14,229 bases of DNA from Fonticula alba ATCC 38817. Lineage: Eukaryota; Protista; Nucleariida. Positions 116 to 14,229 of the stretch are shown in pieces. How positions within the stretch are numbered: the first letter of the stretch is position 1; the number at the start of each line of letters is the position of its first letter. Made by a program: the position numbers and the translations under genes. The notes beneath the pieces are model-generated. The model worked only from the letters and a program-made list of their open reading frames with translations. It did no database searches and was not told the DNA's origin. The stretch lies in the NCBI GenBank assembly GCA_000388065.2, contig KB932216.1; one strand, 5' to 3'.

Positions 116-1490
116 CTACAGGAGGGGCGAGGGCTCCGGCGTGGCCGGGCCCCCGAAGGCCGGGCCCTTGCGCCGGACAAACGTCACGGCCCCCCGGCCC
201 GGGCTGGCCGGCGCCGCGTACGACGGCCCCCCCGCCGGCAGCGCACCATAACGCCCGGCGGCCGGCTCGGCCTCCCGGTGCTGGTGCACCGACGCCAGGG
301 CCCCCTGGAAGGCCGGGCTCGCGCCCAGCGCCTGGTTCAGGGTCGTCATGGACCGGTTCAGCTCCAGCAGGGCCAGCACCAAGTCCCGCTGGGCCGGCAG
401 GTCCCCCGGCGCGGGCAGGCTGCCCGGGCCTGGCGCCAGCAGCTGCTGGCCGCCCGCCGGCGAGGGGGACCCAAGAATCCCGGCCGGGCCCGGCGAGCCC
501 AGCAGACCCCCCGACCCCGGGCATGGCGTCCAGTCCGCCGGCCGGGCCAGCTCCCCCGGGCCCGGCGCACCGGCCAGGCGCCCCGGATCGAGGGCCCGGC
601 CAAAGTCCGAGCCCTCCACCCGCGGCGGCGACGCCCCCAGCCGGGGGCTCAGCCTCCGGCTCAGCAGGCTGTCCGTCAAGGGCGACCGGTTGCGCCCGGC
701 GCTGTCCGGCGAGTCCGGCAGCAGGACAATCCGCGGGGGGGACTCCCCCACCCCGGGCGAGGCCGAGTGCGACCCGGCGCCCGGGGCCCAGCCCGACCCG
801 GGATGCCGAGCGGGAGCGGCCTCCGCCGGCAGGGGCGCCGGCCGCGGCATCCGCTCGGCCACGGCGGCCCCTGCTCCGGCCGGCGATGCCGGTGGGCCCG
901 CGGCCCGCCCCCAGGCGGGGCTTGCCACCGAGCCCAGATGCTGATGGGGCGATGGACGCGCCGGGGGCTCCGGCAGCGGGCCCAGCTCGGCGGCCCGCCC
1001 GCCCCACACCGGGGCCGGGGGGGAGGAAGGGGGCCCACGCGGGGCCTGGCCCCAGGCCGGGGCCGCTCCCGGCTCCGGCCCCTGGGAGGCGGCCGACGCG
1101 CGCCGCTGCGACAGCCGGCTGTATGGCGACAGGAAGGCCGAGCTGTCGACCCTGCTGCCGGCCGCCAGACCCGCGGCCGGGGACGCCAGGTCGCTGGCCC
1201 ATTGCGGCCGGCCGCCGCGGAGCCGCTCTTGCACGGAGGCGTGCGTCGATGCCGAGGGAGCTACGCGCGCGCCCGGGGCGCACATATCGCGTGGCAGACA
1301 TGGAATGCACGATACACACGACAAGCACGAGGAAGGCGACAAACACGAGAAAGGCGACAAACACGAGAAAGGCGACAAACACGAGAAAGGCGACAAACAC
1401 GACAAAGATGACAAACGCACAAACACAACAAACATGACAAAAGCACAAACACACAATCGCACAAACACGACAAACACGACAAACGCACAA

Positions 1491-1524
<34 letters not shown>

Positions 1525-4500
1525 GGCAGCGCCGTGACCACAGGCAAAGGCAAGCATCGTCAGTAGCCGGAAGGGAAAGAAAGGAGAGCAGGCAAGGCAC
1601 GGAGCCGGGCAATCGGGAGGCCATACCCTCTGGTGCCGCCGGCAGCGGCGACAAGCCCTCCGCCGGGCCGGCGCCCACGCGCGGCAGACGCCCACGACGA
1701 ACACGCCCCCGCACGAAGTCCGTATTCCAGGGGGAGGCCAGGGCCGCGGCGCGATCGTCCCCGCACGCCAGCCAGTCGCCGGCGCTCGGGGACGCCCGGG
1801 CCCCGGCCTCCAGGCGAGCCACCGCCCCCGGGCCGCCGGCCAGCCGGAAGGACACCACCGCACACCCGGTGGCCAGGACCACGCTCCGACTGCCGGCCAC
1901 ATAGGAAATGGCCACCGGCGCGTCGCGCCGCGCAAACAGCGGCAGCCGCACCGCCCCCGGGCCCCGGGGCAGCGACGAAAAGAGCGTCCGCCCGGTGGCC
2001 AGGCACACGCACCGCGCCTCCAGGTAGTACTGGTCCTCCACGCACGGGCTCACCAGGGCCACCAGGGCCACGGTGCCGTACACGCGGAAGTCCGCCACCG
2101 CCAGGCTCGGCCGCCCGGCCGACGGCCCGCCGCCCGGGGGGGCCCCCCCATCGCGGTCCGAGCCCAGCCGCATTTGCCGCACGGCCGCCAATGCCCGGAG
2201 CAGGCCGCGCGTCAGGGCGGCATCCTGGCCCCCGGGCAGGGCGGCCCCCGGGCCCGGGTCCGGCCGGACCCGGCGCCGGTCCACCTCCCCCAGCACCCGG
2301 CCGAGGCCCGCCAGGTCGAACGTCCGGACCAGGCCACACACCGACACCGTGTGGCACCACGCCCCGGCCAGGGCAAACCGCCGCACCGGGCGCCCGGTCA
2401 CCAGGCGCCCGACAAACCGCACCCCCGGCCCGCCGGGACTCGTGGCCAGCACCAGCACATGCCCCTGCACCAGCAGCAGCAGCAGCAGCAGGTGCCCCTC
2501 CTGGGCGAAGCCCAGCTGCGAGGGCGGGCCGGCCGCCGGGGGCCCGCCGCCACCGGACCTCGGCGACCCGGGGCACTCCCCGGCGCCGGGGCCGCCGCCC
2601 GCGGCCCGGCCAGCCCCATGGCCACCGTCCTCCTCGGCATCGCCATCATCGGCCCCGAGCCCGGGCGCTTGGAGTTCGGTCGCCAGCTCCGCCAGTACGG
2701 ACGGGATCTCGGCCGACTCGCCGAGCAGCCCGCCCCCCGACCGGAAGGGGCTCCAGGCGTGCGCCTCCGACAGGGGGACCGCCACCAGCGACTCGGCCCC
2801 GGCGCCGCGCGCCAGCCGGAGTTCCTGCACTCTCAGCCGGCCGTCGATGTCCACCGAGGCCACGATCAGCCGCGAGTCTGGTCAAATGCGACCGGTCGGT
2901 TGGGCAGGTAGGGGGTTAGGGAGGCAAGTAGGCAAGCAGGCAAGTAGACAGACAGCTAGCCAGCCACTCGAGCAAGCACAGCCATGGCAGACAGACAGCC
3001 ACTCGAGCAAGCACAGCCATGGCAAACTGCCAGACAGCCCCCATCCGGGGCAGGGAGCAAAGGCGGATCGCCGCAGGCAGGCAGGGGAAAAGGAGGAAAG
3101 GAGCAGAAAGAGGGCCACACATGACCCTCCCCGCCACGCAGGCCCCGGGGAGGACGCACCATTCACATGGATTTCGCATGCGGCCACCGGCCGCGGATGG
3201 GCGTCCTCCTGCTCGAAGAGAACGGCCTGCTCATCGCCGGAGAACAGCCTGCCAAGCACGGGCGCGGTTAGCGCATGCCAGCGTGCGCTCGCACAAACAG
3301 CCGACACCCGGGCGAAGGAAAAGGGGGGGAAAAAAAGCAGAAAGAACACCGCCGCCCCCCAGGAAGGGAGGGGGGGGGGGAATGACGCACACCAGACCGC
3401 CCGAGCGCAGGCCGGCCAGCACCAGCGGCACCGCGCCCGCGTCATCGACATCCTCGGCCCCGGCCGAGCGCGGCCCCACCAGCAACTCACGCAGGGACTC
3501 CGCCAGGGCCGCCATGGACCAGGGCCCGGCCGCGCCGGGGGGGACCACCTCCGACAGGGCCGCCACCGGGACGGCCGCCTGTGCCAGGCAGGTCACCCCG
3601 AAGGCGGCCCCGGGGCCCGGGCGCCCGGCCGCGCCATCGGCTCCCGGCTGCCGGGCGGCAAGGGCCCGCGCGGCGTCGACCGCCGCCCCGGCCAGCCGCC
3701 CGAGCAGGGGCGACGCCGGCCGCACACCGGCCGTCATCTCGGCCACCGACCGGTCCCATGCACGCCACAGGGGCGTCACGCCGTCCGGCGGCCGGTCCGA
3801 TGCCGCATCCGGCCACTCGACCGCCGCCAGGCGCCCGGCCGCCAGCGACACATGGACCGGCTGGCCCGGGGCCAGGCGCCCGGGGCCGCCCGCGCCCGCG
3901 GCCTCCGGCCCGGCCACCACCGCCGACCAGCCAGCGGCCCAGGGCCACCCGGCCCCGGGGTCCGGCAGGGCAAGCTGCCGGACCGCCCCATCCGCCCCGG
4001 CCAGCAGCGGCCACCCGCCGGCAGGGCATGGGCCCGGCACCGCGGCCAACACCCGCGGCTCCTGCACCACATCCACCGGGAAGAAGCCGGCCTCCACCGG
4101 CGTCGACACCGCCAGCCGGGCGCCCTCCGGCGTGTGGACATCCGCCAAGTGCAGGAAGTGGGCATCGGCCCGGTCGGCCGCGCGCGCGACCAGATGCTGC
4201 CCCGCCGGCCCGGCGGCCGTCGCCACCGATGGCCCCGCCAGCCGGACCCCCTCCACCACCAGGCGCCCGGTCAGCATGGCCGACAGGCCCCCGGCATCGG
4301 TCACCTCCAGGAAGGTGACCACCGCCGAGGCCGCCGCCGCCGCCGCCGAGGTCGACGCCGCCGCCGGGGCCGCCGCCGCCGCCGCCCGGCGGGGCAGCCG
4401 CACCGCGGCCTCGGCCAGCCCGGACAGGAGCCTCGGCAGCAGGGCCCCGGGCCCGGGGCCGGCCCCGGCCGGGGCCTCGCCCGGGGCCGCCCCCGGGACC

Positions 4501-6676
4501 AACGGCGCCAGGTCAAGCTGCCGCCAGTTGGCCAGCAGCGGCAGGTCCGCCAGCAGGACCGTGCACCCCCGGGCCACGGCCACCACCGACCCGCTGGCCG
4601 CCACATGCAGGCAAAGCCCGGCCAGCAGGCCGGCGCCCGAGGCGGCCCGGCGCTCGGCCGGCTCCTCCGCCCCCCCGGGCCACGGCAGATGGAACCCCAC
4701 GCAGCTCGGCCCCGGGCCGCGGCCAAAGCGCAGCCGGTCAAAGTGCGCCCACCGCCGGGGGACCGCCACCGACAGAACCTGCCCGCCGGCCGTCAGACAC
4801 AGCAGCCGCCGGCCGCCATTGACCACCACCGCCGCGGTCAGAGCCTCGCCGGCCGCCGGCCCGGCCGCCTCGGCCCCGAGCGAGGCCCCCACCACCGGCA
4901 GGCCCCGGCCCGAGGCCCCGGCATCCGGCACCCCGGGCCCCTGGGGCAGATCACTGCGCAGGCATTCGGCCGCATTCCAAAAGTGCACCGGGTCGCCGGC
5001 CACCGAGCCCGGGCACCCGGCCACCGTGGCCAGCGGCCCGATGAACGAGTACAGCTCCTCGGCCAGCTGGGAAAAGCCCCCGCCGGCATGGGACCCGGCC
5101 CCGGACGCCGGCCACAGCCCCGGCAGGTCGGCCGACTGCCGAGCCGGCAGGCTCAGCGGCAGGTCATCCGCCAAGCCGGCCGCCGCGTCCGGGCTCGGGC
5201 AGAACCCGGCCCACACCACCGGGGCGGCGGCTTGGCCGGTGGCCACCGGCCGCCGGACCGCCGGCCCGCCCGGCGTCACCAGAAACACCGACACCGCCCC
5301 GGCCGAGCCCCGGCACACGGCCAGCGCCACACGACGGCATGGCTCCCCCGGCCCGGCGCCCGGCGGGTCCCCCGGCGACAGCCCGCCCGCCAGCGGCCGG
5401 ACCAGCGGCGAGTCCGGCCACACCGGCCAGGCCCCCGGGCCCGGCTGCCGGGCCGCCGGCCCCCCGGCATGCCGTTGGCGGCACCCCTCGCACCGGGGCA
5501 GCAGCCGCCCCGGCCCGGACAGACACGCCGGCAGCCGGGCCAATGCCAGGGCCGTGATCTCGGCCCCGGGGTCCTCGCACTGGGCGTAGGCCACCGGCTG
5601 CCGGAGGCCCGGCTGCCGGGCCACATCCGCCAGCGACCGGGGCCCGGCCGCCGGCCGCCGGCCATGCTCCTCGGCCGGGGCCAGCCCCGGCCACGGGCTC
5701 CCCGGCCAGTCGCCCAGGTCATACACGGCCACCAGCCCCGAGGCCAGCCCCGCGGCCAGGAAGGCCCCGCACCCGGAGAAGGCCAGGCTCACCACCGGGC
5801 AGACCGACCGCGCCAGCGGCACCGACGCGCACAGCGGCCGGCCCAGCACCACCGACCGCCGGCCCTGTCCGGACCCCTCCCAGCAGGGGGCCGTCAGGGT
5901 GATCAGCCCGCCGGGGCCCGGCGACGCGGTGGCCAGCCGCCCGGACCCGGGGTGCGACGCGGCCACCGGCCGCGGCCAGTCGGCCGACAGCCCGGCCGGC
6001 GCCCGCCACTGCCGCTGCTGCTGCTGCTGCTGCTTCAGCGGGTCCCCCCCGGCGAAGGCCGCCTCCTGCGGCTGGTGCACGAAGAGCGGCCCCAGGTCCG
6101 GCGGGAAGAGGGCATGCTGCAGCCCGGTCAGGGCCATCGGCTCCAGGCTGTTCCCGGAGCCGCGCGAAAACTAACACCCAAGCGAAGAGCACAAACGGTC
6201 AGCATGCGTCCATGCGCCCATGGGTCAGGGCGGGGGATAGGGAGTGAGACACCCCCGGGGGCGGTGGCAACGTGCAGCGCAAGTACATCATCATCATCAT
6301 CATCATCATCATAACCATCGACGTCGTGGCCGTCGTCGTCGTGGCCGCCGCCGGTGGCCGCCCCCGCCGAGGGGGCAGCCTCATCCCAGGGCAGGATCTG
6401 GCTGGCGAGCGGGCTGAAGGACCGGGGGCCCGGGCTCGGCCCGAGCCCGGGCGCGCCGGCCGGCCCCGGCCGGAAGAACGGCGACACCGTGGCCGGGGCC
6501 AGCCCCGGCGAGGGGTACCGCGTGCCGAGGGTCAGTCGCGAGCGTAGGTGCGCCCCGCGGCCGACCGGCGTCCGGGCCAGCCCGGCCCCCCGGGGCGCCG
6601 ACCCCGACGAGTAGGACACCACCCCGGCCGGCAGCGACGCCGGGGCCCAGTGGTGCGGCTGGCGCAGGGCATCCAT
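116..6676 (-). CDS. Large divergent WD40/beta-propeller-like protein, about 1880 aa; exons (minus) 6676..~6287, 6170..3391, 3248..3160, 2877..1627, 1260..116
   Basis: The ORFs 6128..7216 (from MDALRQ, ATG at 6676), 3231..6137, 2882..3490 (part) and 116..2863 join in frame through GT-AG introns with matching phases. Blade-like motifs include VVSLAFSGCGAFLAAGLASGLVAVYDL, LLAGADGAVRQL, LVLAGLRSGGLVLF, DAHPRPVAACEI and LIVASVDIDGRLRV. Codons are strongly G/C-ending. The first donor is ambiguous (6286, 6271 or 6250). The stop TAG at 118..116 overlaps a possible donor (GTAGGG at 119), so one further exon cannot be excluded. No specific family recognised. Confidence 0.72.
1323..1412. repeat. Intronic minisatellite, 5 x 18 bp (AAACACGAGAAAGGCGAC)
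   Basis: Three exact central units (1341-1394) flanked by two degenerate units. Confidence 0.95.
1493..1522. repeat. (AC)15 microsatellite in intron
   Basis: Read directly from the sequence. Confidence 0.95.
2878..3159 (-). other. U2 intron (282 nt, phase 1) of the WD40-like gene
   Basis: G|GTGCGT donor; CCCTAAC with branch A at 2916; ACCAG| acceptor; joins IHVN-D-SRLIVASVD. Confidence 0.85.
2961..3024. repeat. Exact 29-bp direct repeat x2 (CAGCCACTCGAGCAAGCACAGCCATGGCA), 35-bp period, intronic
   Basis: Copies at 2961-2989 and 2996-3024. Confidence 0.9.
3249..3390 (-). other. U2 intron (142 nt, phase 2) of the WD40-like gene
   Basis: GT|GTGCGT donor; GCTAAC with branch A at 3268; GGCAG| acceptor; frame closes. 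Confidence 0.85.
6171..6286 (-). other. Probable first intron of the WD40-like gene; donor uncertain (6286, 6271 or 6250)
   Basis: GCTGAC with branch A at 6199 and GTTAG| acceptor at 6171 are clear. Three phase-0 GT candidates exist (GTACTT, GTTGCC, GTCTCA), all weak. Confidence 0.5.
6287..6311 (-). repeat. (GAT)n coding trinucleotide repeat giving a poly-Asp tract
   Basis: ATC repeats on the plus strand; the other two minus frames give poly-Met or stop codons. Confidence 0.8.
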
Positions 6677-7239
6677 GCCGGCGCTTGTGCGAGGGGGAAG
6701 GGGGAAACGGAAAAGGCGAAGGAGAGGAGGAAGGTCTGCGCGCGCGCTCGTGTGTGTGTGTGCGTGTGCGTGTGTGGCAACGAAGTGGCGGAGGAAGAGG
6801 GGGAAGAGTGCCACCGGCCCGGGGCCACTGGTCGGCCAGCGGCACCGGAAAAATGTCCCCCCCCCCCGCCTCGCCGCCCAGGCGGGGGGCCTCGAGTCCC
6901 GGCCCCACCTCCCGACGAGACGATCGCCCAGGTCCGCCCCCGCCTGGGGGGATCCCGCGGCCATCTCCCCGCGCCGGCCCCGCCCTCGCGCGGCGATCTG
7001 CCGCGGACTGCCGCCGTTACCACCGCCGGCGCCGGCCGGCGGGCAAAAGAGACAAGCAAAAAAAGAGACAGGGAGGGCTCTCTGCCGGTCCGCCCCCCCC
7101 CCCCCCCCGCCCCCCGTGTGGCGGCGAAGCAGCGGGCGAGAGAGTGTATTGTTTCCGTGGGTGCCACCGGATTGGCGCACAAACATGGCTCCAGCGGACG
7201 GGAGCGCCACCGGCACGCGGGGGGCCGGGGCATAACGGC

Positions 7240-10200
7240 CTACGAACTGCCCACGGGGAAGGGTTGGCTGTTGCTCAGAACCAGCATCCCATGCTCGTGC
7301 GACACGTAGCCCTTCATGAAGCCCTGCGTGTGTGTGTGTGTGGGGGGGGGGGGGGGCGAGGAAAAAAGCGCTCGGGGTCAGCCGCGTCGCCGGGAGACGG
7401 TGCGCAAGCAGCGAGAAGTGGGAGCCGGGCGGGAGGTCGGCGGGGCCGTCCCCTCGCCTCCGGGGCGGGGGGCGAAGCCCGCATCGCCCGGGCGCGCACC
7501 TGGTCGATCAGCGAGCTGAGCATGGTCTCGATGTGGACGAGATCGGCCTCCGCGCCCTTGTCCTCGGCCGCCGGCCGGGCGCCCTTCGCCTGGGGGTCGA
7601 GACGCGCGATGGCGTCCAGATGCCGGCGCGAGGGGCCCGACGGATCGGCGAAGGGGGTCAGCAGCTCGGCCAGCGAGGGCGCCGGCCCGGGGGCCCGGTG
7701 CGACGTGTATGGCAGGGCCGCCGGCAGCGTGCGCACCACCTCGCGGCAGGCTGCCAGCGTGGTAAGCGGCACGCGCGACGAGCCGATCGCCGCCGCACTG
7801 CCCGCGTTGAGGGGAGCCGGCGGGGGGGAGGGGGGAGGAGGGGGAGGGGGAGAAGAGGAGGAGGGGGAGAAGAGGAGGAGGGGGAAAGAGAGACACGGAA
7901 GAGAGACAAAAGGAGAGGCAGAAAGAGAGGCAGAAAGAGAGGCAGAAGAGAGACAAAAAACACACACAAAAACACACAAAAGAAGACAATAAGAGACACA
8001 AACAAAGACAATAAGAGACACAAACAAAGACAATAAAAGACACAAACAAAGACAATAAAAGACACAAAAACACACAAAAAAGAAAAAGATAGAGAGCAGA
8101 CACCCAACAAGCAAACCGACACCGGTGCGTTAGACACACACGTCCAGGAGCAACAGGGCCAAAGACACAGAACAGGAGCATGGAGGGCCATACCTGCGCC
8201 GGACGAGGCTGGCCCAGGTGCAGATGCGCGCGCGCTCCCACAGCAAGAGCAGCCGCCACCGGGCCAGCCAGCTGCTGCAGGACCCGAGCACCGCATCGAA
8301 GAGCCCCAGATGCCCGGCCACCACCGCATACAGCAGGGCGTAGCACGGCGCCGGCAGGTGCCCCAGCACCACCGGGCCCTTGCCGGCCCCCGGGCGCTGG
8401 TAACTCCCAGCCAGCCAGGCCGTCGTGGCCGGCCCATACAGCGCCTGCTCCACGGCATATGGCCGGCCCCAGCGCGAGCCCGCCGAAGGGCCGCCCAGGT
8501 ACACCCGCAGCCCGGCCAGGCCCACCGGCCGGTTGAGGATCAGCGAGCAGGGCACCAGGTACATGAGGATTAGACTGGAGGGCGCGGTGAAGACCACCCA
8601 CCGGCACCGGCAGCAACAGCAGCAACAGCAGCAACAGCGCCAGGCAAGTGGCCAGGCCGCGAGGGAGGCAGCGAGGCGCGCCCGGGCGCGCCGGAAACCC
8701 CGGTCGAGTAAGCGCCGTCCGTCAGTTGGCTGGCCCGGCAAGCCGGCAGAGGAAGGGACACAAGGGAAGGCCCGAGCTGACGTACCGGCGATTGGTGGCG
8801 CTGGCGTTGACGCGTGGCGAGCGCCACAGCAGCGAGAAGTCCTCGAAGGCCGCCTCAATGCGCGACGCCTCGATCGACCGCAGGGCACGCAGGAAGATGC
8901 TCACGATGTTCGGCGACCCGAGGTCCCCGTGGAAGGAGTAAAACCGCGAGGCCAGCGACGCCGGCGGGTAGATGGCCGCCTGCACCGCGCGATAGATGGC
9001 CTCCATTTCGCGATGGCGCAACAACTGCCCACATTCCCCCCGGCGGAGTCGCCGGGCCGCCGCCCACCAACACCACCACCCCAGGCACGGGAGTCAGAAC
9101 CACAACCACAAAAGAGGGACGCCGGACACGGGCCCAGCGAGGGAGGCCAGAAAAAAAAAAAAAAAAAAAAAAGGGTGGGGGGGAAAAAAAATGGCGGGGG
9201 GCCCCGCGCACCAGGAACAGCACGCGCGAGTATTCGTTGGCCAGCGTGGCCGCGGCCCAGCGCCGGGCCCCGCCGCCGCCGCCCATGATCATCTGCTGGG
9301 TGACGCTGTGCAGCAGGGTGGCACACTGGCGCAGGAGGCCCTGGGCCAGGTCCCGCCGGCGCTGGCCGGCCGCCCCGCGCGCCGCCAACGCATCCAGCGC
9401 CACCGAGCTCCGGGAGGCCGTGCGCAACAGGTCGTCGGTCGAGTCGCCGGGCTCGGCGGCCGAATCGTCGGCCGCCAGCAGCAGCAGACGCCGCGCCACG
9501 GCGTATGTGGCCAGGCGGAAGCTCCGCGCCAGGCTCGCCCCGAGCCCGGCATAGAAGAGGGCATTGCCCCGCAGGTGCGGCTGCAGCGACGTACAGGCGG
9601 CGCAGGGAGGAACCAGCAGGGGACATCGGCAGGGGGGGGGGGGAAGGCGGAAGTTAAGGAGACACCGTTCACATGGCCATTCGGGCGGGGAAGGAGGGGA
9701 GAGAGAGAGAGAGAGAGAGAGAAAGCAGGGCCGAAGGGGACAGGGGGCGGGGCAGGAAAAGGGACGGGAAAAAAAGAAGCGGGCGAAAGCGCGCATGCCG
9801 GCGAAGCGCCAATGTAGGGCGGCATCCGCCGGCATGACACAGGCAACCGGCACAGGAAGGATATTGCAAAGCGGCCTGCGTGGCCAGCAGCTCGCCGAGA
9901 GCGCACTCCAGCAGCAGCGCGTCGAAGGACCCGACCGCCAGTGGGCGCACAATGGCCGCCACCCGGGCCGCGGCCCGGCCCTGGCCGGCCAGGCGGTGCC
10001 AAAACCGCCCGGCCATGGCCTCGGCCGGCGCACCGCCACCAGGCAGCAGCAGCCCGGCCAGCGGCGGCGGCGACGGCCGGTGCTGCTGCGGCAACCCCCG
10101 CGACGAGGCCACCGGCGGGGTGCCGTCCTCGCGCAGGAACAGCGGGTCGGCCAGCGCCTCGGCCAGCAGGGCCGCCGCCGGGGCGGCCGCGGCGCCCTTG

Positions 10201-10563
10201 CCACCGGCCGCAGGCTCGGCCGGGCAGCCCGACGGCAGCACCGCCCCGGGGTCCGCACCGGCGGCATACTTCGCGGCCCCGGCGAAGCCCCGGTCGCGGG
10301 CCGCCTGGGCCAGCTGCTCGGCCCGCGCGCGCCAGCCCCACCCCGTCACCACGGCCTCCAGCAGGTCCGCCATCCAGCCGGCCAGGCCCGGCGCGCCGGC
10401 CACCGCCATCTGGTCGCTCAGCAACAGGACCAGAGCCGGCCCGGCGGCCCCGACGCCCGAGGCCCCGCTCGTGCTGGCTGCCAGCCCGGCGCCAAGGACC
10501 CGGGCCAGCCCCAAGCGCCGGAGGTAGTCGGCCCGGAAGTCGGCGTCCGGGCCCGGGGCAGCG

Positions 10564-10597
<34 letters not shown>

Positions 10598-11120
10598 ATG
10601 CTGAGCCGCCGCCGGCACCCGGCCAAAAGAGCCCGGCCGTGCCCGGGTCCCGCGGCGCTCCGCACGGCAGGCTCAGCAAGCGCCCAAGCAGGTCGGTGCG
10701 CTCGACCCCGGCCGCGATGGCCAGCTGGAAGCGCGCCGCCGGCGTCCCGGCGTCAATCTGCCCGAAGTCGAAGTCGGCCTCCAGCCGCGGGTCATCCCCG
10801 GAGGCCGAGGCCCCCGGCTCGGCCAGCAGCTCCGCCGCCCGGGCGAAGTAGCCCAGCACGGCGGCGCGGCTGGCCGGGTCGGCCGGCGCCAGCGGCGCCC
10901 GCAGCGGGCCCGGCCCGGCGCCCAGGCGCGTCCCGGGGACCGCCTGCGGCCCGGGCCCCGGCGACACGGGCGGCGAGGCGCGCTTGCGCGTGCGCTCGCC
11001 CTCCTCGCTGGCGCCGCCATCGGCCGGCGCCGCATCACGCGCCCGGCGCCGGGTGCCGGATGCCGACCCGGCACCGGACCGGGCCTTCGCCCTCGTCTGG
11101 ACAGACCGCGGGGGGGCCAT
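7240..11120 (-). CDS. PCID2: PCI-domain protein of the PCID2/Thp1/Csn12 family (TREX-2 subunit-like), about 878 aa; exons (minus) 11120..9865, 9590..9212, 9024..8786, 8574..8194, 7797..7500, 7323..7240
   Basis: The spliced product contains RRWAAATLANEYSRVLF (cf. PCID2 KKWGMLFLVNQLFKIYF), NRRLILMYLVPCSLIL (cf. NKRMILIYLLPVKMLL) and the C-terminus IETMLSSLIDQGFMKGYVSHEHGMLVLSNSQPFP (cf. [34 protein letters not shown]). Reference motifs are quoted from memory. Exon lengths sum to 2637 nt (879 codons) and all phases close. Confidence 0.87.
7324..7499 (-). other. U2 intron (176 nt, phase 0) of the PCID2 gene
   Basis: CAG|GTGCGC donor; GGCTGAC with branch A at 7378; CGCAG| acceptor; joins LIDQ to GFMKGY, restoring the family motif. 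Confidence 0.92.
7798..8193 (-). other. U2 intron (396 nt, phase 2) of the PCID2 gene with a distant branch site
   Basis: CAG|GTATGG donor; GTCTAAC with branch A at 8130; GGCAG| acceptor at 7798; no internal AG. Confidence 0.87.
7983..8070. repeat. Intronic minisatellite, 4 x 22 bp (AAGACAATAARAGACACAAACA), next to about 3 x 12 bp (GAGAGGCAGAAA, 7913-7947)
   Basis: Units start at 7983, 8005, 8027 and 8049. Confidence 0.92.
8575..8785 (-). other. U2 intron (211 nt, phase 2) of the PCID2 gene
   Basis: CG|GTACGT donor; AACTGAC with branch A at 8722; TCCAG| acceptor; joins TNR-R-LILMYL, restoring the family motif. Confidence 0.9.
8611..8638. repeat. (CAGCAACAG)x3 repeat inside an intron
   Basis: Lies within intron 8575..8785; the poly-Q and poly-C translations in the ORF track are artefacts. 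Confidence 0.85.
9025..9211 (-). other. U2 intron (187 nt, phase 0) of the PCID2 gene
   Basis: CTG|GTGCGC donor; TTCTGAC with branch A at 9094; the first downstream AG is GGCAG| at 9025; frame closes. Confidence 0.87.
9591..9864 (-). other. U12-type (minor spliceosome) AT-AC intron, 274 nt, phase 2
   Basis: 5' end CA|ATATCCTTCC (9864..9855); branch box TCCTTAAC (9660..9653); 3' end TGTAC| (9591). Splicing joins ORF 9669..11120 in frame to the downstream PCI exons (AALQ-SLQPHL). Confidence 0.85.
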
Positions 11121-11344
11121 GGCTACAGCGGGCGATAAGAGACAACAAAGGGGGGGGGGGGAGGGGAGGGAGGGAGGGAGAGGAGGGGGGAAAAGGGGAA
11201 AAAGGAAGGAGCAAATGCGGCGAGAGGCGCGGATCGACTCTAGAGAAGGCGCGGCTAGCCCCCGGGGCCCGGCCGAGCCCCCTCCCCCGGCACCGGAGCG
11301 GCTCTTGTCCCCCCGCCGCAGGACGCGTGCGTTGGCACTTGGAT

Positions 11345-11376
11345 GGAAAGCAGTTTATCGAGATATAATGTACAGA
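11345..11376 (-). promoter_or_regulatory. AT-rich island, candidate 3'-end processing signal of the MFS gene (or core promoter element of PCID2)
   Basis: The minus strand reads TGTA-CAT-TATAT-CTC-GATAAA; it is the only AT-rich patch in a very GC-rich intergenic region. Confidence 0.35.
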
Positions 11377-11731
11377 GAAGGTGAAGGTGAAAGGGGGGGC
11401 GGGGGGCGGGGGGGGGCGGGGGCGACCCGCAACAGGCGAGCCCCGGGAAAGGGCGGAGACCGCGGAGGGCGGGGCGGGGCCGTGCCTCGGGGGCGCGGGG
11501 CGCAGCCGGAGGACCGGCGGCAACGGCGACGGCAGACGCGGGAGGGGGGGGGGCGGCGGGAGGGACGGAGCCGGCCCGCCCCGGGGCCGGGGGGCCGGGG
11601 GGGGGGGCGGGCGGCGGGCGGCAGCCGGGTCCGGCCTGCGCGCGCGCGCGCGGAGCATGCGCAGTTCCGCCCGCTGCCTGGCCTGCCCCCGCCCGCCCCG
11701 GCCGGCTTCGCGCGCCTCAGCCCTCCTGGCG

Positions 11732-14136
11732 TCAGAGCCCCCCCGGGAAGTAGGCGTCCTGGAGCAGGTCGCCCGGCCCGGCGCCCGGTGGCACCCGGCC
11801 GCCATCCGGATCGTCGCTCCACTCGTTGTCGCTCATGTAGTCGATCATCCACGAGGAGAGGGCCATGTGCTGGTCGCTGGCCGCCTCGGCCAGGAGGTCG
11901 GCGCTCCGGCGCGACAGCTCCGCCGCCGGCTTCGAGCCCCGCGGCCCGGCCGCCGGGGCACCAGGCGCCAGGGACGTGCCGAAGAGCGTGGCCGCCGACG
12001 CATCCGAGGCCGACCGCGCGGCCGGCACCGGCCGGCTCGCCCCGCCGCCGGGAATGTCCCCTGCCGCCGTGGCCACTGCCACTGTCGCCTCTTGTTGCTG
12101 CGGCTGCGGCAGCGGCTGCGGCTGCGGCTGCGGCTGCTGCTCCGGTCGCAGGGTGTACGGGTTGGTGGTGAAGTCGTCCCCGACATCGCCAAACTCATCG
12201 AGAGTCGAATAGTCGTGCTGCAGCAGGAAGGACACGCCCCGGGCCCGGCCCCCGGCCCGGGGATTGCCCAGCCCGGCGGCCGTGAACGAGCCGGACCCCG
12301 GGTCGGCCATCGACCCGAAGGTCGTGGTCGAGTGCCGGGCCCATGCCCGGCCGACGTCCGAATCCAGCGACATGGTGGACATGCGCCGGCTGTCGGCGTC
12401 CGAGGCGTCGGCAACACGGGCACCGCCGCCGCCGGAGCCGGCCCCGCTGGAGCTGCCGCCGGTGCCGCCATCGTGCCGGGAGCCCGCGGCGCGGCCGGTC
12501 GACCGGGCGTCAAGGCGCTCCGCCTCGGAGCTCAAATCCACGGCCTCCTGGTAGGGATCGAAGTCCGGCGGCCGGCGGTGCGGCACCAGCCGCGGCCAGA
12601 ACACCAGCAGCAGGGCAATGGCGAAGATGGACGCAAAGAAGCACGCATACAACAACGCATCACCCAGGGGATTCAGGTCGTAGAAGACCACCGACAGCAT
12701 GTGCCCCAGGGCCCGGGCAAAGAGCGTGGCCCCGAGGATGATCGGAATCAACAGCGAGTAGTACATGGGCCCGGAAATTTGGATGAACATCATCATGGAG
12801 AAGGACTGCAGCAGCGGGTAGCCGATGGCGAAAAACAGGTCGAACACCAGGAACCGCCAGATGGGGGTGATCTCCTTGGAGAAGCTGTTGGCTCCGATCG
12901 AGCCGACTGCATCGCCCGGGCAAGCGCGACATCATTAGTATCATTCGGCCGGCGGCCACTGTCCTTCCCCTGCCCTGGCCCGCGCGGCCGCCCACGGCCC
13001 CACCCTCGCGACACCAGCGCCCGGGGCACCCCTCGCTCCCGCCCTGGCGGCTGGGGAGGGGGGGAGAGGGAGAGGAAGGGGGGGGGGGGGGGGGGACAAA
13101 GACGCACCTGCCATGATGACCAGCCCCAGCAGCATGCCAATCCGGTAGTTGGGGAAGATATTGGCCAGCCGGAAGATGAAGACCGTCAGCGAGGAGAGGA
13201 TGGCCAGCACGGCGTAGAAGTAGGACACCGCATTCAGGTCCCAGTCGTAGAGCTCCGTCAGGAAGGGCGGCGTGGCCGTGAAGAGGGCCGAGCACACCAA
13301 ATTCCCCACGCCCGAGAGGGTGGCCGTGATGAGGAGGGCCCCGCGGTCGACGCCGCGCATCCTGAACATGCTGAACAGCTGCATGACATTCTCGCGCTTG
13401 ATGGCGCGGCGGAGGCGCCGCTGGGGGGGTGGGGAAGGTGGGGGGACGAGGGAAGAGGAGCAGAGACAAGTGGAGCAGAGACAAGAGGAGCAGAGACAAG
13501 AGGAGCAGAGACAAGTGGAGCAGAGACAAGTGGAGCAGAGACAAGAGGAGCAGAGAGAGAAGAGAAAGAGAGGAGAAGAGAAAGGAAAGAGAGAAGAGAA
13601 AGGAAAGAGAGAAGAGAAAGAGAAGAAACAAGCAACAGAAGGCAGGGGCAATCCGAAAAAGGGCTCCACGTCAGACACCGCCCGTGGCAGGCACACAGAA
13701 GAAAAAAAACGACAACGAACCCGCTCTTGCTGACGATGGAAAGAATCCAGCGCCTCCTGCTCGGCCTCCGACAGGGACGGCCGCCGCGGGGGCGCATTGG
13801 CGTCCGAGGCCGAGGCGCCGGCCACCTCACCGGCGGCCACGCCGTCCGGAGGATTCACCGGAGCCGTGGCCTCGGCCGCGCTGTAGGGCTCATCGCCATC
13901 GGCCAGCAGCGGCTGTGCCAGATTCCCCTCCGAAGGGTCGGCCGCCTCCTCGCCGGAGCCCACCAGCGTCGGGCGCCGGCTCGGCACCGATTGCAAGCTC
14001 AGCGCCTGCCCGGCCACCAGGAGGACCTGCGTCGGGCGGTACTCATCGAACAGGAAGATGGCGATGGCCACCAGCACGAAGGAGAAGACAATGGACAGGA
14101 GCCCCGGCGCGCGGAACGGCGTGATGAGGATTTTGC
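11732..14136 (-). CDS. MFS transporter, MFSD8/CLN7-like, 5'-partial (start lies beyond the window); exons (minus) 14136..13721, 13420..13108, 12906..11732
   Basis: Several hydrophobic transmembrane segments. The order PFRAPGLLSIVFSFVLVAIAIFLFDEY, long loop, DRGALLITATLSGVGNLVCSALFTATPPFLTELYDW, then FDLFFAIGYP and LLLVFWPRLVP resembles MFSD8-family helices 6-12. Splice phases (1/0/1) close and the stop is TGA at 11734..11732. Confidence 0.78.
12907..13107 (-). other. U2 intron (201 nt, phase 1) of the MFS gene
   Basis: CAG|GTGCGT donor; TACTAAT with branch A at 12935; TGCAG| acceptor; frame closes. Confidence 0.9.
13421..13720 (-). other. U2 intron (300 nt, phase 0) of the MFS gene with a distant branch site
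   Basis: CGG|GTTCGT donor; GTCTGAC with branch A at 13671; CCCAG| acceptor; no AG between 13663 and 13423. Confidence 0.85.
13457..13555. repeat. Intronic minisatellite, 6.5 x 15 bp (GGAGCAGAGACAAGW), followed by an 18-bp unit x~2.7 (13573-13620)
   Basis: Units start at 13457, 13472, 13487, 13502, 13517 and 13532. Confidence 0.93.
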
Positions 14137-14229
14137 CTGCACCCAACCGCACGAAAGGCAGCCGGACGGGACGGGAGAGAGGCAGGGAGAGAGAGAGAGA
14201 GGGAGGGAGAGAGGGAGAGGGAGAGAGAG
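14137..14229 (-). other. 3' part of an MFS gene intron running off the window
   Basis: (CT)n/pyrimidine tract ending GTGCAG| at 14137; no other AG and no branch motif within the 93 nt visible. Confidence 0.75.

Follow-up and report, generated by a model that had tools for sequence, protein, structure and literature searches.

Does a relative of Fungi outside Fungi proper still splice U12-type introns? The question is raised by a minus-strand gene of Fonticula alba ATCC 38817 (contig KB932216.1 of assembly GCA_000388065.2), which is predicted to encode a protein of the PCID2/Thp1 family, the PCI-domain subunit of TREX-2 (mRNA export). Within the stretch of 14,229 nucleotides (nt) analysed here (the window), positions 9591-9864 had been read, from the letters alone, as an AT-AC intron of the minor spliceosome interrupting this gene; that reading is referred to below as the original prediction. 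In this study, we report that exact AT-AC excision of 9591-9864 is confirmed in assembled transcript contigs, and we describe the splice signals of the intron, the identity of the spliced product and its relation to the U12-type intron of animal PCID2 genes. The best explanation of the results as a whole, to which we give a probability of about 0.8, is a genuine U12-type intron that is removed by the minor spliceosome, that uses a distant 3' splice site and that is probably shared with animals.

Splicing was examined in four small sequencing runs from 2012, which represent two samples of one study and were available as Logan contigs. The four runs carry approximately 75% of the words sampled from positions 8800-11200, and their contigs were placed on 7000-11400. 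The runs were taken to be RNA because the same contigs are also without four further introns of the gene. In each run, a single contig of about 2.2 kb consists of the pieces 9865-10538, 9212-9590, 8786-9024, 8194-8574, 7499-7797 and 7131-7319. The joint 9590/9865 is explicit in 4/4 runs and skips 274 nt, the ends of which read GT..AT on the plus strand, that is, AT..AC on the strand of the gene. Its placement is unambiguous, with no bases shared between the two sides of the joint and flanks of at least 255 nt. Contig depth is zero in the bin 9646-9792, which lies inside the intron, and neither an alternative joint nor retention of the intron was seen in the contigs of the four runs. Since the contigs join 9590 to 9865, GCTTTGCA-GTCGCTGCAG is the real junction, and the 274-nt AT-AC intron of the original prediction was thus recovered exactly. 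The in-frame GT-AG alternatives running from 9962, 9950 or 9935 to 9581 are present in the DNA and unused in these contigs; splicing through GT/GC-AG junctions alone (e.g. 9950 to 9581), the outcome named beforehand as speaking against an AT-AC intron, is absent among the contig joints.

On the minus strand, with a slash marking each splice boundary, the junctions read GCTTTGCA/ATATCCTTCC ... TCTCCTTAAC ... CCTGTAC/GTCGCTGCAG, or, set out in the reading frame, ...GCC GCT TTG CA/ATATCCTTCCTG ... GTGTCTCCTTAACTTCC ... CGCCGCCTGTAC/G TCG CTG CAG... The intron is of phase 2, because exon 1 comprises 1256 nt (418 codons and 2 nt), and it lies within the codon of Gln419 (CA/G). The spliced coding sequence of 2637 nt keeps its frame throughout, and its GC content at third codon positions is 0.86-0.98 along the full length. 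It specifies 878 amino acids (aa), so that the expected phase and the continuous 878-aa protein were both borne out.

The signals inside the intron are those of the U12 class. A /RTATCCTT donor stands at the first intron base, a TCCTTRAC box precedes the 3' site, and the termini are AT-AC; the individual motifs, ATATCCTT at the donor and TCCTTAAC at the putative branch site, are located in Table 1. In the whole window, counted on both strands, RTATCCTT occurs once (0.07 expected from shuffles) and TCCTTRAC occurs once (0.28 expected from shuffles), and both single occurrences fall inside the AT-AC intron, on the strand of the gene and in the correct order. The eight matches out of nine positions that had been counted to each of the consensus sequences RTATCCTTT (5' site) and TTCCTTRAC (branch) are correct. 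With the donors of the other four introns of the gene (GTGCGC, GTACGT, GTATGG and GTGCGC), the AT-AC donor has only +2T and +3A in common, and recognition of this donor by the major-type machinery is for that reason unlikely. The call of a U12-type AT-AC intron in a PCID2/Thp1 gene therefore holds on a junction fixed by RNA, a perfect ATATCCTT, the window's only TCCTTAAC within the intron, and a product homologous to PCID2. From the splicing outcome we infer that a working minor spliceosome excises the intron. An Rfam scan of the 14-kb window found no small nuclear RNA.

The 3' end of the intron is less conventional. Measured to the last intron base, the two adenosines of TCCTTAAC that are candidates for branching are at distances of 64 nt (9655) and 63 nt (9654). 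Apart from these, at -65/-64, the final 70 nt of the intron contain adenosines only at -36 (position 9626) and -2, with none from -35 to -3. Wherever branching occurs, no adenosine within the canonical window is available for it. As the spacer between the box and the terminal dinucleotide is devoid of both AG and AC, the 3' site in use is the earliest AC or AG that follows the box. A shortening of the distance by RNA structure is not obvious, since the spacer (9593-9652) showed no stable fold relative to shuffled sequence (z -1.16). In published U12 introns, the optimum spacing from branch to 3' site is 11-13 nt, the canonical range is 10-26 nt and there is no pyrimidine tract (PMC3584512). 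The classifier intronIC scores the branch region at -55..-5 only (PMC7367187), and a study of Physarum searched -45..-5 only (bioRxiv 10.1101/2020.10.12.336362).

These features count against a U12-type assignment. The branch box stands 63 nt from the 3' site, against the optimum of 11-13 nt, and beyond the -55..-5 and -45..-5 windows of the classifiers; the usual hallmark of U12 introns, the lack of a polypyrimidine tract, is absent, the spacer being 80% pyrimidine, although in so C-rich a genome this may or may not matter for function. Short spacing, which the AT-AC intron does not have, is a hallmark drawn from animals and plants and is not the mechanistic definition of the class. A further reservation concerns the transcript evidence, which consists of assembled contigs of one study and not of raw reads.

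The other introns of the gene place this architecture in context. Adenosine makes up only 4-10% of the four GT-AG introns. In two of them the terminal AG is the only one, and the remaining two are free of AG over the 155 and 47 nt that precede the 3' site. For introns 2-5 (7324-9211, minus strand), the distance from the best CTRAC box to the 3' site is 69, 147, 332 and 54 nt. As judged from these sequences, this suggests that distant branch points and long AG-exclusion zones may be normal in this genome. Because the GT-AG introns of the gene are A-poor with far CTRAC boxes, the 63-nt spacing may mirror a genome-wide architecture of the 3' site. In two of the four GT-AG introns, the CTRAC box was also found to be exactly 61 nt from the 5' site.

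In the mechanism that we propose, U11 and then U6atac would pair with the ATATCCTT donor, U12 would pair with TCCTTAAC, and the minor spliceosome would excise the intron. Once branching has taken place, the AC nearest downstream of the box would serve as the 3' site, reached across the 60-nt pyrimidine-rich stretch free of AG and AC, a spacing well beyond that of animal and plant U12 introns. The use of TCCTTAAC as the branch site, for which it is the candidate, and the choice of the first AC as the 3' site are both inferred. As a tentative generalisation, which we hold to be somewhat short of an even chance, the minor spliceosome of this lineage may have lost the tight spacing rule that applies in animals, in plants and even in Physarum: it would pair with a canonical TCCTTAAC at a distance of 60-100 nt and cross an AG/AC-free pyrimidine-rich tract to reach the next AC or AG. 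The major introns of the genome appear to do likewise, with far-upstream CTRAC boxes.

Other accounts of the same observations differ from this mechanism in the spliceosome, in the branch site or in the reality of the joint itself. Removal of a rare U2-type AT-AC intron by the major spliceosome would make the tract and the far branch point simply the ordinary 3' architecture of the genome. The spacer, with its high pyrimidine content and lack of AG and AC, is compatible with this, and the 3' half of the AT-AC intron does resemble the GT-AG introns of the gene, which are A-poor and largely AG-free with CTRAC boxes 54-332 nt from the 3' site. The U2-type AT-AC introns described so far carry donors of U2-like sequence, for example ATAAGT, and are not known to contain TCCTTAAC. 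The donor here is, however, a perfect ATATCCTT, which is unlike the local GT(A/G)(C/T)G donors at most positions, the TCCTTAAC box is perfect and unique in the window, and the orthologous-looking intron of animals is clearly U12-type; we therefore consider major-type removal very improbable. Only slightly less improbable is that the minor spliceosome acts while branching takes place elsewhere than at TCCTTAAC, either at the lone adenosine 9626 (CCGATG, 35 nt from the 3' end) or at a nearer non-adenosine. The canonical spacing of 10-26 nt speaks for a closer branch, which would need A9626 or a C, U or G. CCGATG, however, is without complementarity to the branch-recognition sequence of U12, whereas TCCTTAAC is perfect and unique, and A9626 is itself beyond the usual range. 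That the joint is an artefact of assembly, of template switching by reverse transcriptase or of a genomic deletion allele would find room in the fact that Logan contigs and not reads were used, from runs guessed to be RNA. There is, however, no sequence common to both sides of the joint, the same joint is found in four runs and two samples, and the contigs concerned lack every one of the five introns, with the frame preserved and splice signals at the ends, which leaves an artefact scarcely credible.

The identity of the product was approached from its C-terminal part. When single exons were compared with Pfam and PDB, there was no match except for the last exon, which gave a match (E 4e-4) to the last C-terminal residues of human PCID2 in entries that include 3t5x and 8r7j. 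The match of this exon to yeast Csn12 was weaker (E 0.83 against 4e-4); assignment of the gene to PCID2/Thp1 rather than to the paralogue Csn12 is tentative. An alignment of the exon-6 peptide with 25 C-terminal residues of human PCID2 (A4) was then used to scan metagenome contigs and gave 73 PCID2-like loci, and full-length open reading frames (ORFs) from 17 to 27 of these 73 loci were built into a PCID2 profile. The members of the profile are true PCID2, as the ORF of locus L052 matches human PCID2 (8r7j) with E 1e-162 and the Pfam PCI domain is found. The spliced Fonticula protein matched this profile with 55-57 bits in hmmsearch, in three colinear stretches, and with a probability of 98.2% in hhalign (E 3e-14, residues 366-878). 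The homology takes in the PCI region as well as the KGY(I/V)SH...PFP motif at the C-terminus. Because of the hmmsearch, hhalign and C-terminal exon matches, the 878-aa protein is predicted from its sequence to be a member of the PCID2/Thp1 family in which sizeable insertions are specific to the lineage and the N-terminus is much extended.

Searches with the other exons were uninformative. An exhaustive HMMER search with exon 2 returned three low-complexity matches, among them neither the self match nor an orthologue, and a metagenome scan with the same exon found no relatives. Protein-database searches with a stretch of exon 1 and with a staggered pseudo-spliced alignment (A2) found nothing, both being swamped by low-complexity words. 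A profile from which the exon-6 columns had been dropped (A1) gave only junk matches in PDB. Clusters of bacterial FtsW obtained from a protein-atlas search with exon 4 were rejected as spurious.

Human PCID2 is listed among the genes with a U12 intron ('twintron' genes), and its U12-spliced form encodes a 399-aa protein (PMC3564746). Conservation of this intron reaches from human as far as lamprey and was recorded in 34 of 35 genomes; PCID2 of Drosophila is intronless (PMC3564746 and its supplement). The mention of a minor intron in vertebrate PCID2 in the original prediction is therefore correct for human and for vertebrates as far as lamprey. For a direct comparison, we used L035, a mammal-like genomic contig, the spliced translation of which is identical to human residues 67-103 and has a C-terminus unlike human. 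L035 has an AT-AC U12 intron of 540 nt and phase 2 at 1104-1643, which reads ATATCCTTTT...TTCCTGAATACAATAC/ or, in a longer reading, ATATCCTTTTCA...TTTTCCTGAATACAATAC/. Its context is ...ATT GTC CA/A TCT TTC CTG, that is, IVQ89/S90FL at human Gln89; the context in Fonticula is GCT TTG CA/G TCG CTG, that is, ALQ419/S420L. Common to both introns are the AT-AC subtype, phase 2, a split CA/R glutamine codon, a following serine codon and hydrophobic neighbours. A second animal-like locus with the same exon pattern, L014, carries a U12-like donor, GTATCCTAT, and a box, TTCTTAAC, at the Gln89 codon. At L014:1654-1769, the only in-frame acceptor gives an intron ending in AT (...AAATCAT/A TCG), 12 nt after the TTCTTAAC box; on its sequence, a GT-AT non-canonical minor intron would be possible there.

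On this basis, it is rather likely that the Fonticula intron and the AT-AC U12 intron of animal PCID2 descend from a single ancestral intron, a judgement drawn from comparison of the sequences. What tells against it is the alignment of the N-terminal half, which is unreliable. The hhalign confidences are 0-2 out of 9 and Gln419 falls four columns from Gln89; the forward-backward posterior for Gln419 being equivalent to human Gln89 is only 0.00-0.21, depending on the settings; and when the N-terminal half is given to hhalign by itself, PHLRG is paired with human AHLRC and the junction moves to near residue 60. The Gln89 column was ranked first in about half of the posterior settings. Measured from the YAVA anchor (Fonticula 448-451, human 109-112), the junction is 29 residues upstream in Fonticula versus 20 in human. 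MAFFT --add, hmmalign, hhalign of sub-pieces and the forward-backward posterior were all unstable on the N-terminal half, and positional identity is accordingly not claimed as demonstrated. The original prediction had placed the junction at about residues 60-70 of PCID2; one possible alignment (near human residue 60) agrees with this, and the position would be Gln89 instead if the intron is orthologous to that of animals. In the proposed comparison of position and phase with PCID2 orthologues, the phase, together with the subtype and codon context, matches L035, and the position itself depends on the alignment.

A U12-type intron that is not orthologous to the animal PCID2 intron, whether another minor intron of ancestral age or one peculiar to this lineage, and located near human residue 60 or at some other place, is the less probable outcome and still a serious one. 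The PHLRG/AHLRC alignment favours it, as does the wide-window posterior, which prefers columns equivalent to human residues 52-55. Several intron positions are known in this region, among them those of two non-animal PCID2 loci: L056:2911-2981 is a GT-AG intron of phase 0, 2 codons upstream of the animal U12 site (QVTL/VQNF), and L013:7188-7447 is a GT-AG intron of phase 0, 4 codons downstream of it (VQPFIK/AFRED). A separate origin would, however, require the AT-AC subtype, phase 2, the CA/R glutamine, the TCN serine and the hydrophobic flanks (LQ/SL versus VQ/SF) all to coincide; Gln89 is the top column in about half of the settings, the anchor offset of 29 versus 20 residues occurs in an insertion-rich protein, and U12 introns are rare and mostly old. 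The GT-AG introns of L056 and L013 may themselves be shifted remnants of conversion from U12 to U2 type, or independent introns.

Several known systems are comparable to the Fonticula intron. The vertebrate PCID2 U12 intron, as represented by L035, is like it in gene family, AT-AC termini, ATATCCTT donor, phase 2, the CA/R glutamine followed by serine, and location in the N-terminal helical part. It differs in spacing: between the end of the L035 box, TTCCTGAAT, and the 3' site there are about 9-10 nt, a canonical distance, whereas 63 nt and a pyrimidine tract separate the two in Fonticula; moreover, the vertebrate protein has 399 aa against 878 aa, and positional identity rests on an uncertain alignment. 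With the canonical U12 introns of animals, plants and some fungi, it shares RTATCCTT, TCCTTRAC, AT-AC termini and a non-zero phase, and departs from them in the 63-nt spacing, the pyrimidine-rich tract and a box outside the -55..-5 region of intronIC. Some U2-type introns, of which vertebrate examples are known, combine a far branch point with an AG-exclusion zone; they likewise have a long AG-free pyrimidine-rich stretch after which the first suitable dinucleotide downstream is used, as the GT-AG introns of the Fonticula gene also appear to, but these are substrates of the major spliceosome, whereas the donor and branch box in Fonticula are minor-type. The U2-type AT-AC introns have the terminal dinucleotides in common with the Fonticula intron, and only the latter has both U12 motifs in perfect form. 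The transformed minor introns of Physarum polycephalum also belong to an amoeboid lineage and combine a canonical 5' motif with deviating 3' signals; there, however, the branch sequence is altered (TTTGA) and the spacing is tight at 9-12 nt, whereas in Fonticula the sequence is canonical and the spacing relaxed (bioRxiv 10.1101/2020.10.12.336362).

The intron is thus of a known kind with a variant architecture that departs from the known rule for branch-box spacing, and it is probably ancient. The contigs show directly, at the transcript level, that U12-type introns are still spliced in Fonticula, a relative of Fungi that lies outside Fungi proper. If it is the same intron as that of animal PCID2, this minor intron was already present in the ancestor shared by animals and fungi, if not earlier. 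Of greater interest is the distance of 63 nt from branch to 3' site, together with the pyrimidine tract. Should the TCCTTAAC box indeed be the one in use, a textbook constraint on the minor spliceosome would not be universal and surveys of the last 45-55 nt would mis-score such introns; if the spacing rule has been lost in the lineage as a whole, classifiers with that limit would undercount minor introns in such genomes. Among the papers searched, none was retrieved that mentions Fonticula together with U12 or minor introns, and the supplements of large minor-intron surveys contained no text on Fonticula or PCID2. The GC content of the window is 73.7%, and that reported for F. alba is 70.3%, which is extreme among eukaryotes (PMC10752896).

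The gene model is given in Table 1; the PCID2 gene is correctly modelled only if AT-AC junctions are allowed.

Table 1. Coordinates of the exons, introns and splice signals of the Fonticula PCID2/Thp1 gene in the window
Feature	Positions	Strand	Remarks
Exon 1	9865..11120	-	ATG at 11120; 418 codons + 2 nt; ends ...GCT TTG CA; contig pieces 9865-10538, 10606-11141
Intron 1, AT-AC	9591..9864	-	joint 9590/9865, four runs
U12-type 5' splice-site motif ATATCCTT	9857..9864	-	exactly at the RNA-defined intron start
U12-type branch-site box TCCTTAAC	9653..9660	-	candidate branch adenosines 9655, 9654
Spacer, branch box to 3' site, 60 nt	9593..9652	-	80% pyrimidine, 55% C, one adenosine (9626), no AG/AC
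3' terminal AC (CTGTAC/G)	9591..9592	-	first AC or AG 3' of the branch box
Exon 2	9212..9590	-	G + 126 codons, starts SLQPHLRG...; contig piece 9212-9590
Intron 2, GT-AG (GTGCGC...GGGCAG), 187 nt	9025..9211	-	contig gap 9212 to 9024
Exon 3	8786..9024	-	contig piece
Intron 3, GT-AG, 211 nt	8575..8785	-	joint 8574/8786
Exon 4	8194..8574	-	start of PCI region (RLILMYLVP...); matches profile columns 244-263, 283-351
Intron 4, GT-AG, 396 nt, tandem-repeat-rich	7798..8193	-	joint 7797/8194
Exon 5	7500..7797	-	contig piece
Intron 5, GT-AG (GTGCGC...ACGCAG), 176 nt	7324..7499	-	boundaries refined from a 3-letter contig offset
Exon 6, coding part (GFMKGYVSHEHGMLVLSNSQPFPVGSS + stop)	7240..7323	-	contig; matches human PCID2 C-terminus, E 4e-4

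No ATG was found upstream of 11120 in the region checked, which extended as far as 11400. At the other end of the gene, the contigs extend the 3' untranslated region to about 7131. Exon 1 contains a (GCC)11 tract at 10564-10596, which encodes a poly-alanine run, and the RNA contigs are interrupted there (ending at 10538 and resuming at 10606), presumably as an effect of assembly or filtering and not of an intron. A second joint present in 4/4 runs, 7116/9976, skips 2859 nt; with 21 nt on one side and G-/GCC-rich repeats adjoining, it looks like a repeat-driven chimera and was not accepted as splicing. A sub-threshold Rfam match to mir-1538 at 10042-10093 on the minus strand (32.6 bits, the gathering score being 78), in GC-rich coding sequence, is most likely due to chance.

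Repeats are also found in the GT-AG introns. Intron 4 carries tandem repeats with periods of 10-22 nt at 7827-8083, such as 5.3 copies of a 22-nt unit with 90% match, while intron 3 carries (GCAGCAACA)3 and intron 2 a long T/C homopolymer run. On the same strand, the upstream neighbour (11732-14152) is predicted to be a multi-exon membrane-protein gene with transporter-like hydrophobic segments and repeat-rich introns. Downstream of PCID2, at 116-6137, two very long ORFs of 915 and 968 aa, also on the minus strand, are probably exons of one large gene.

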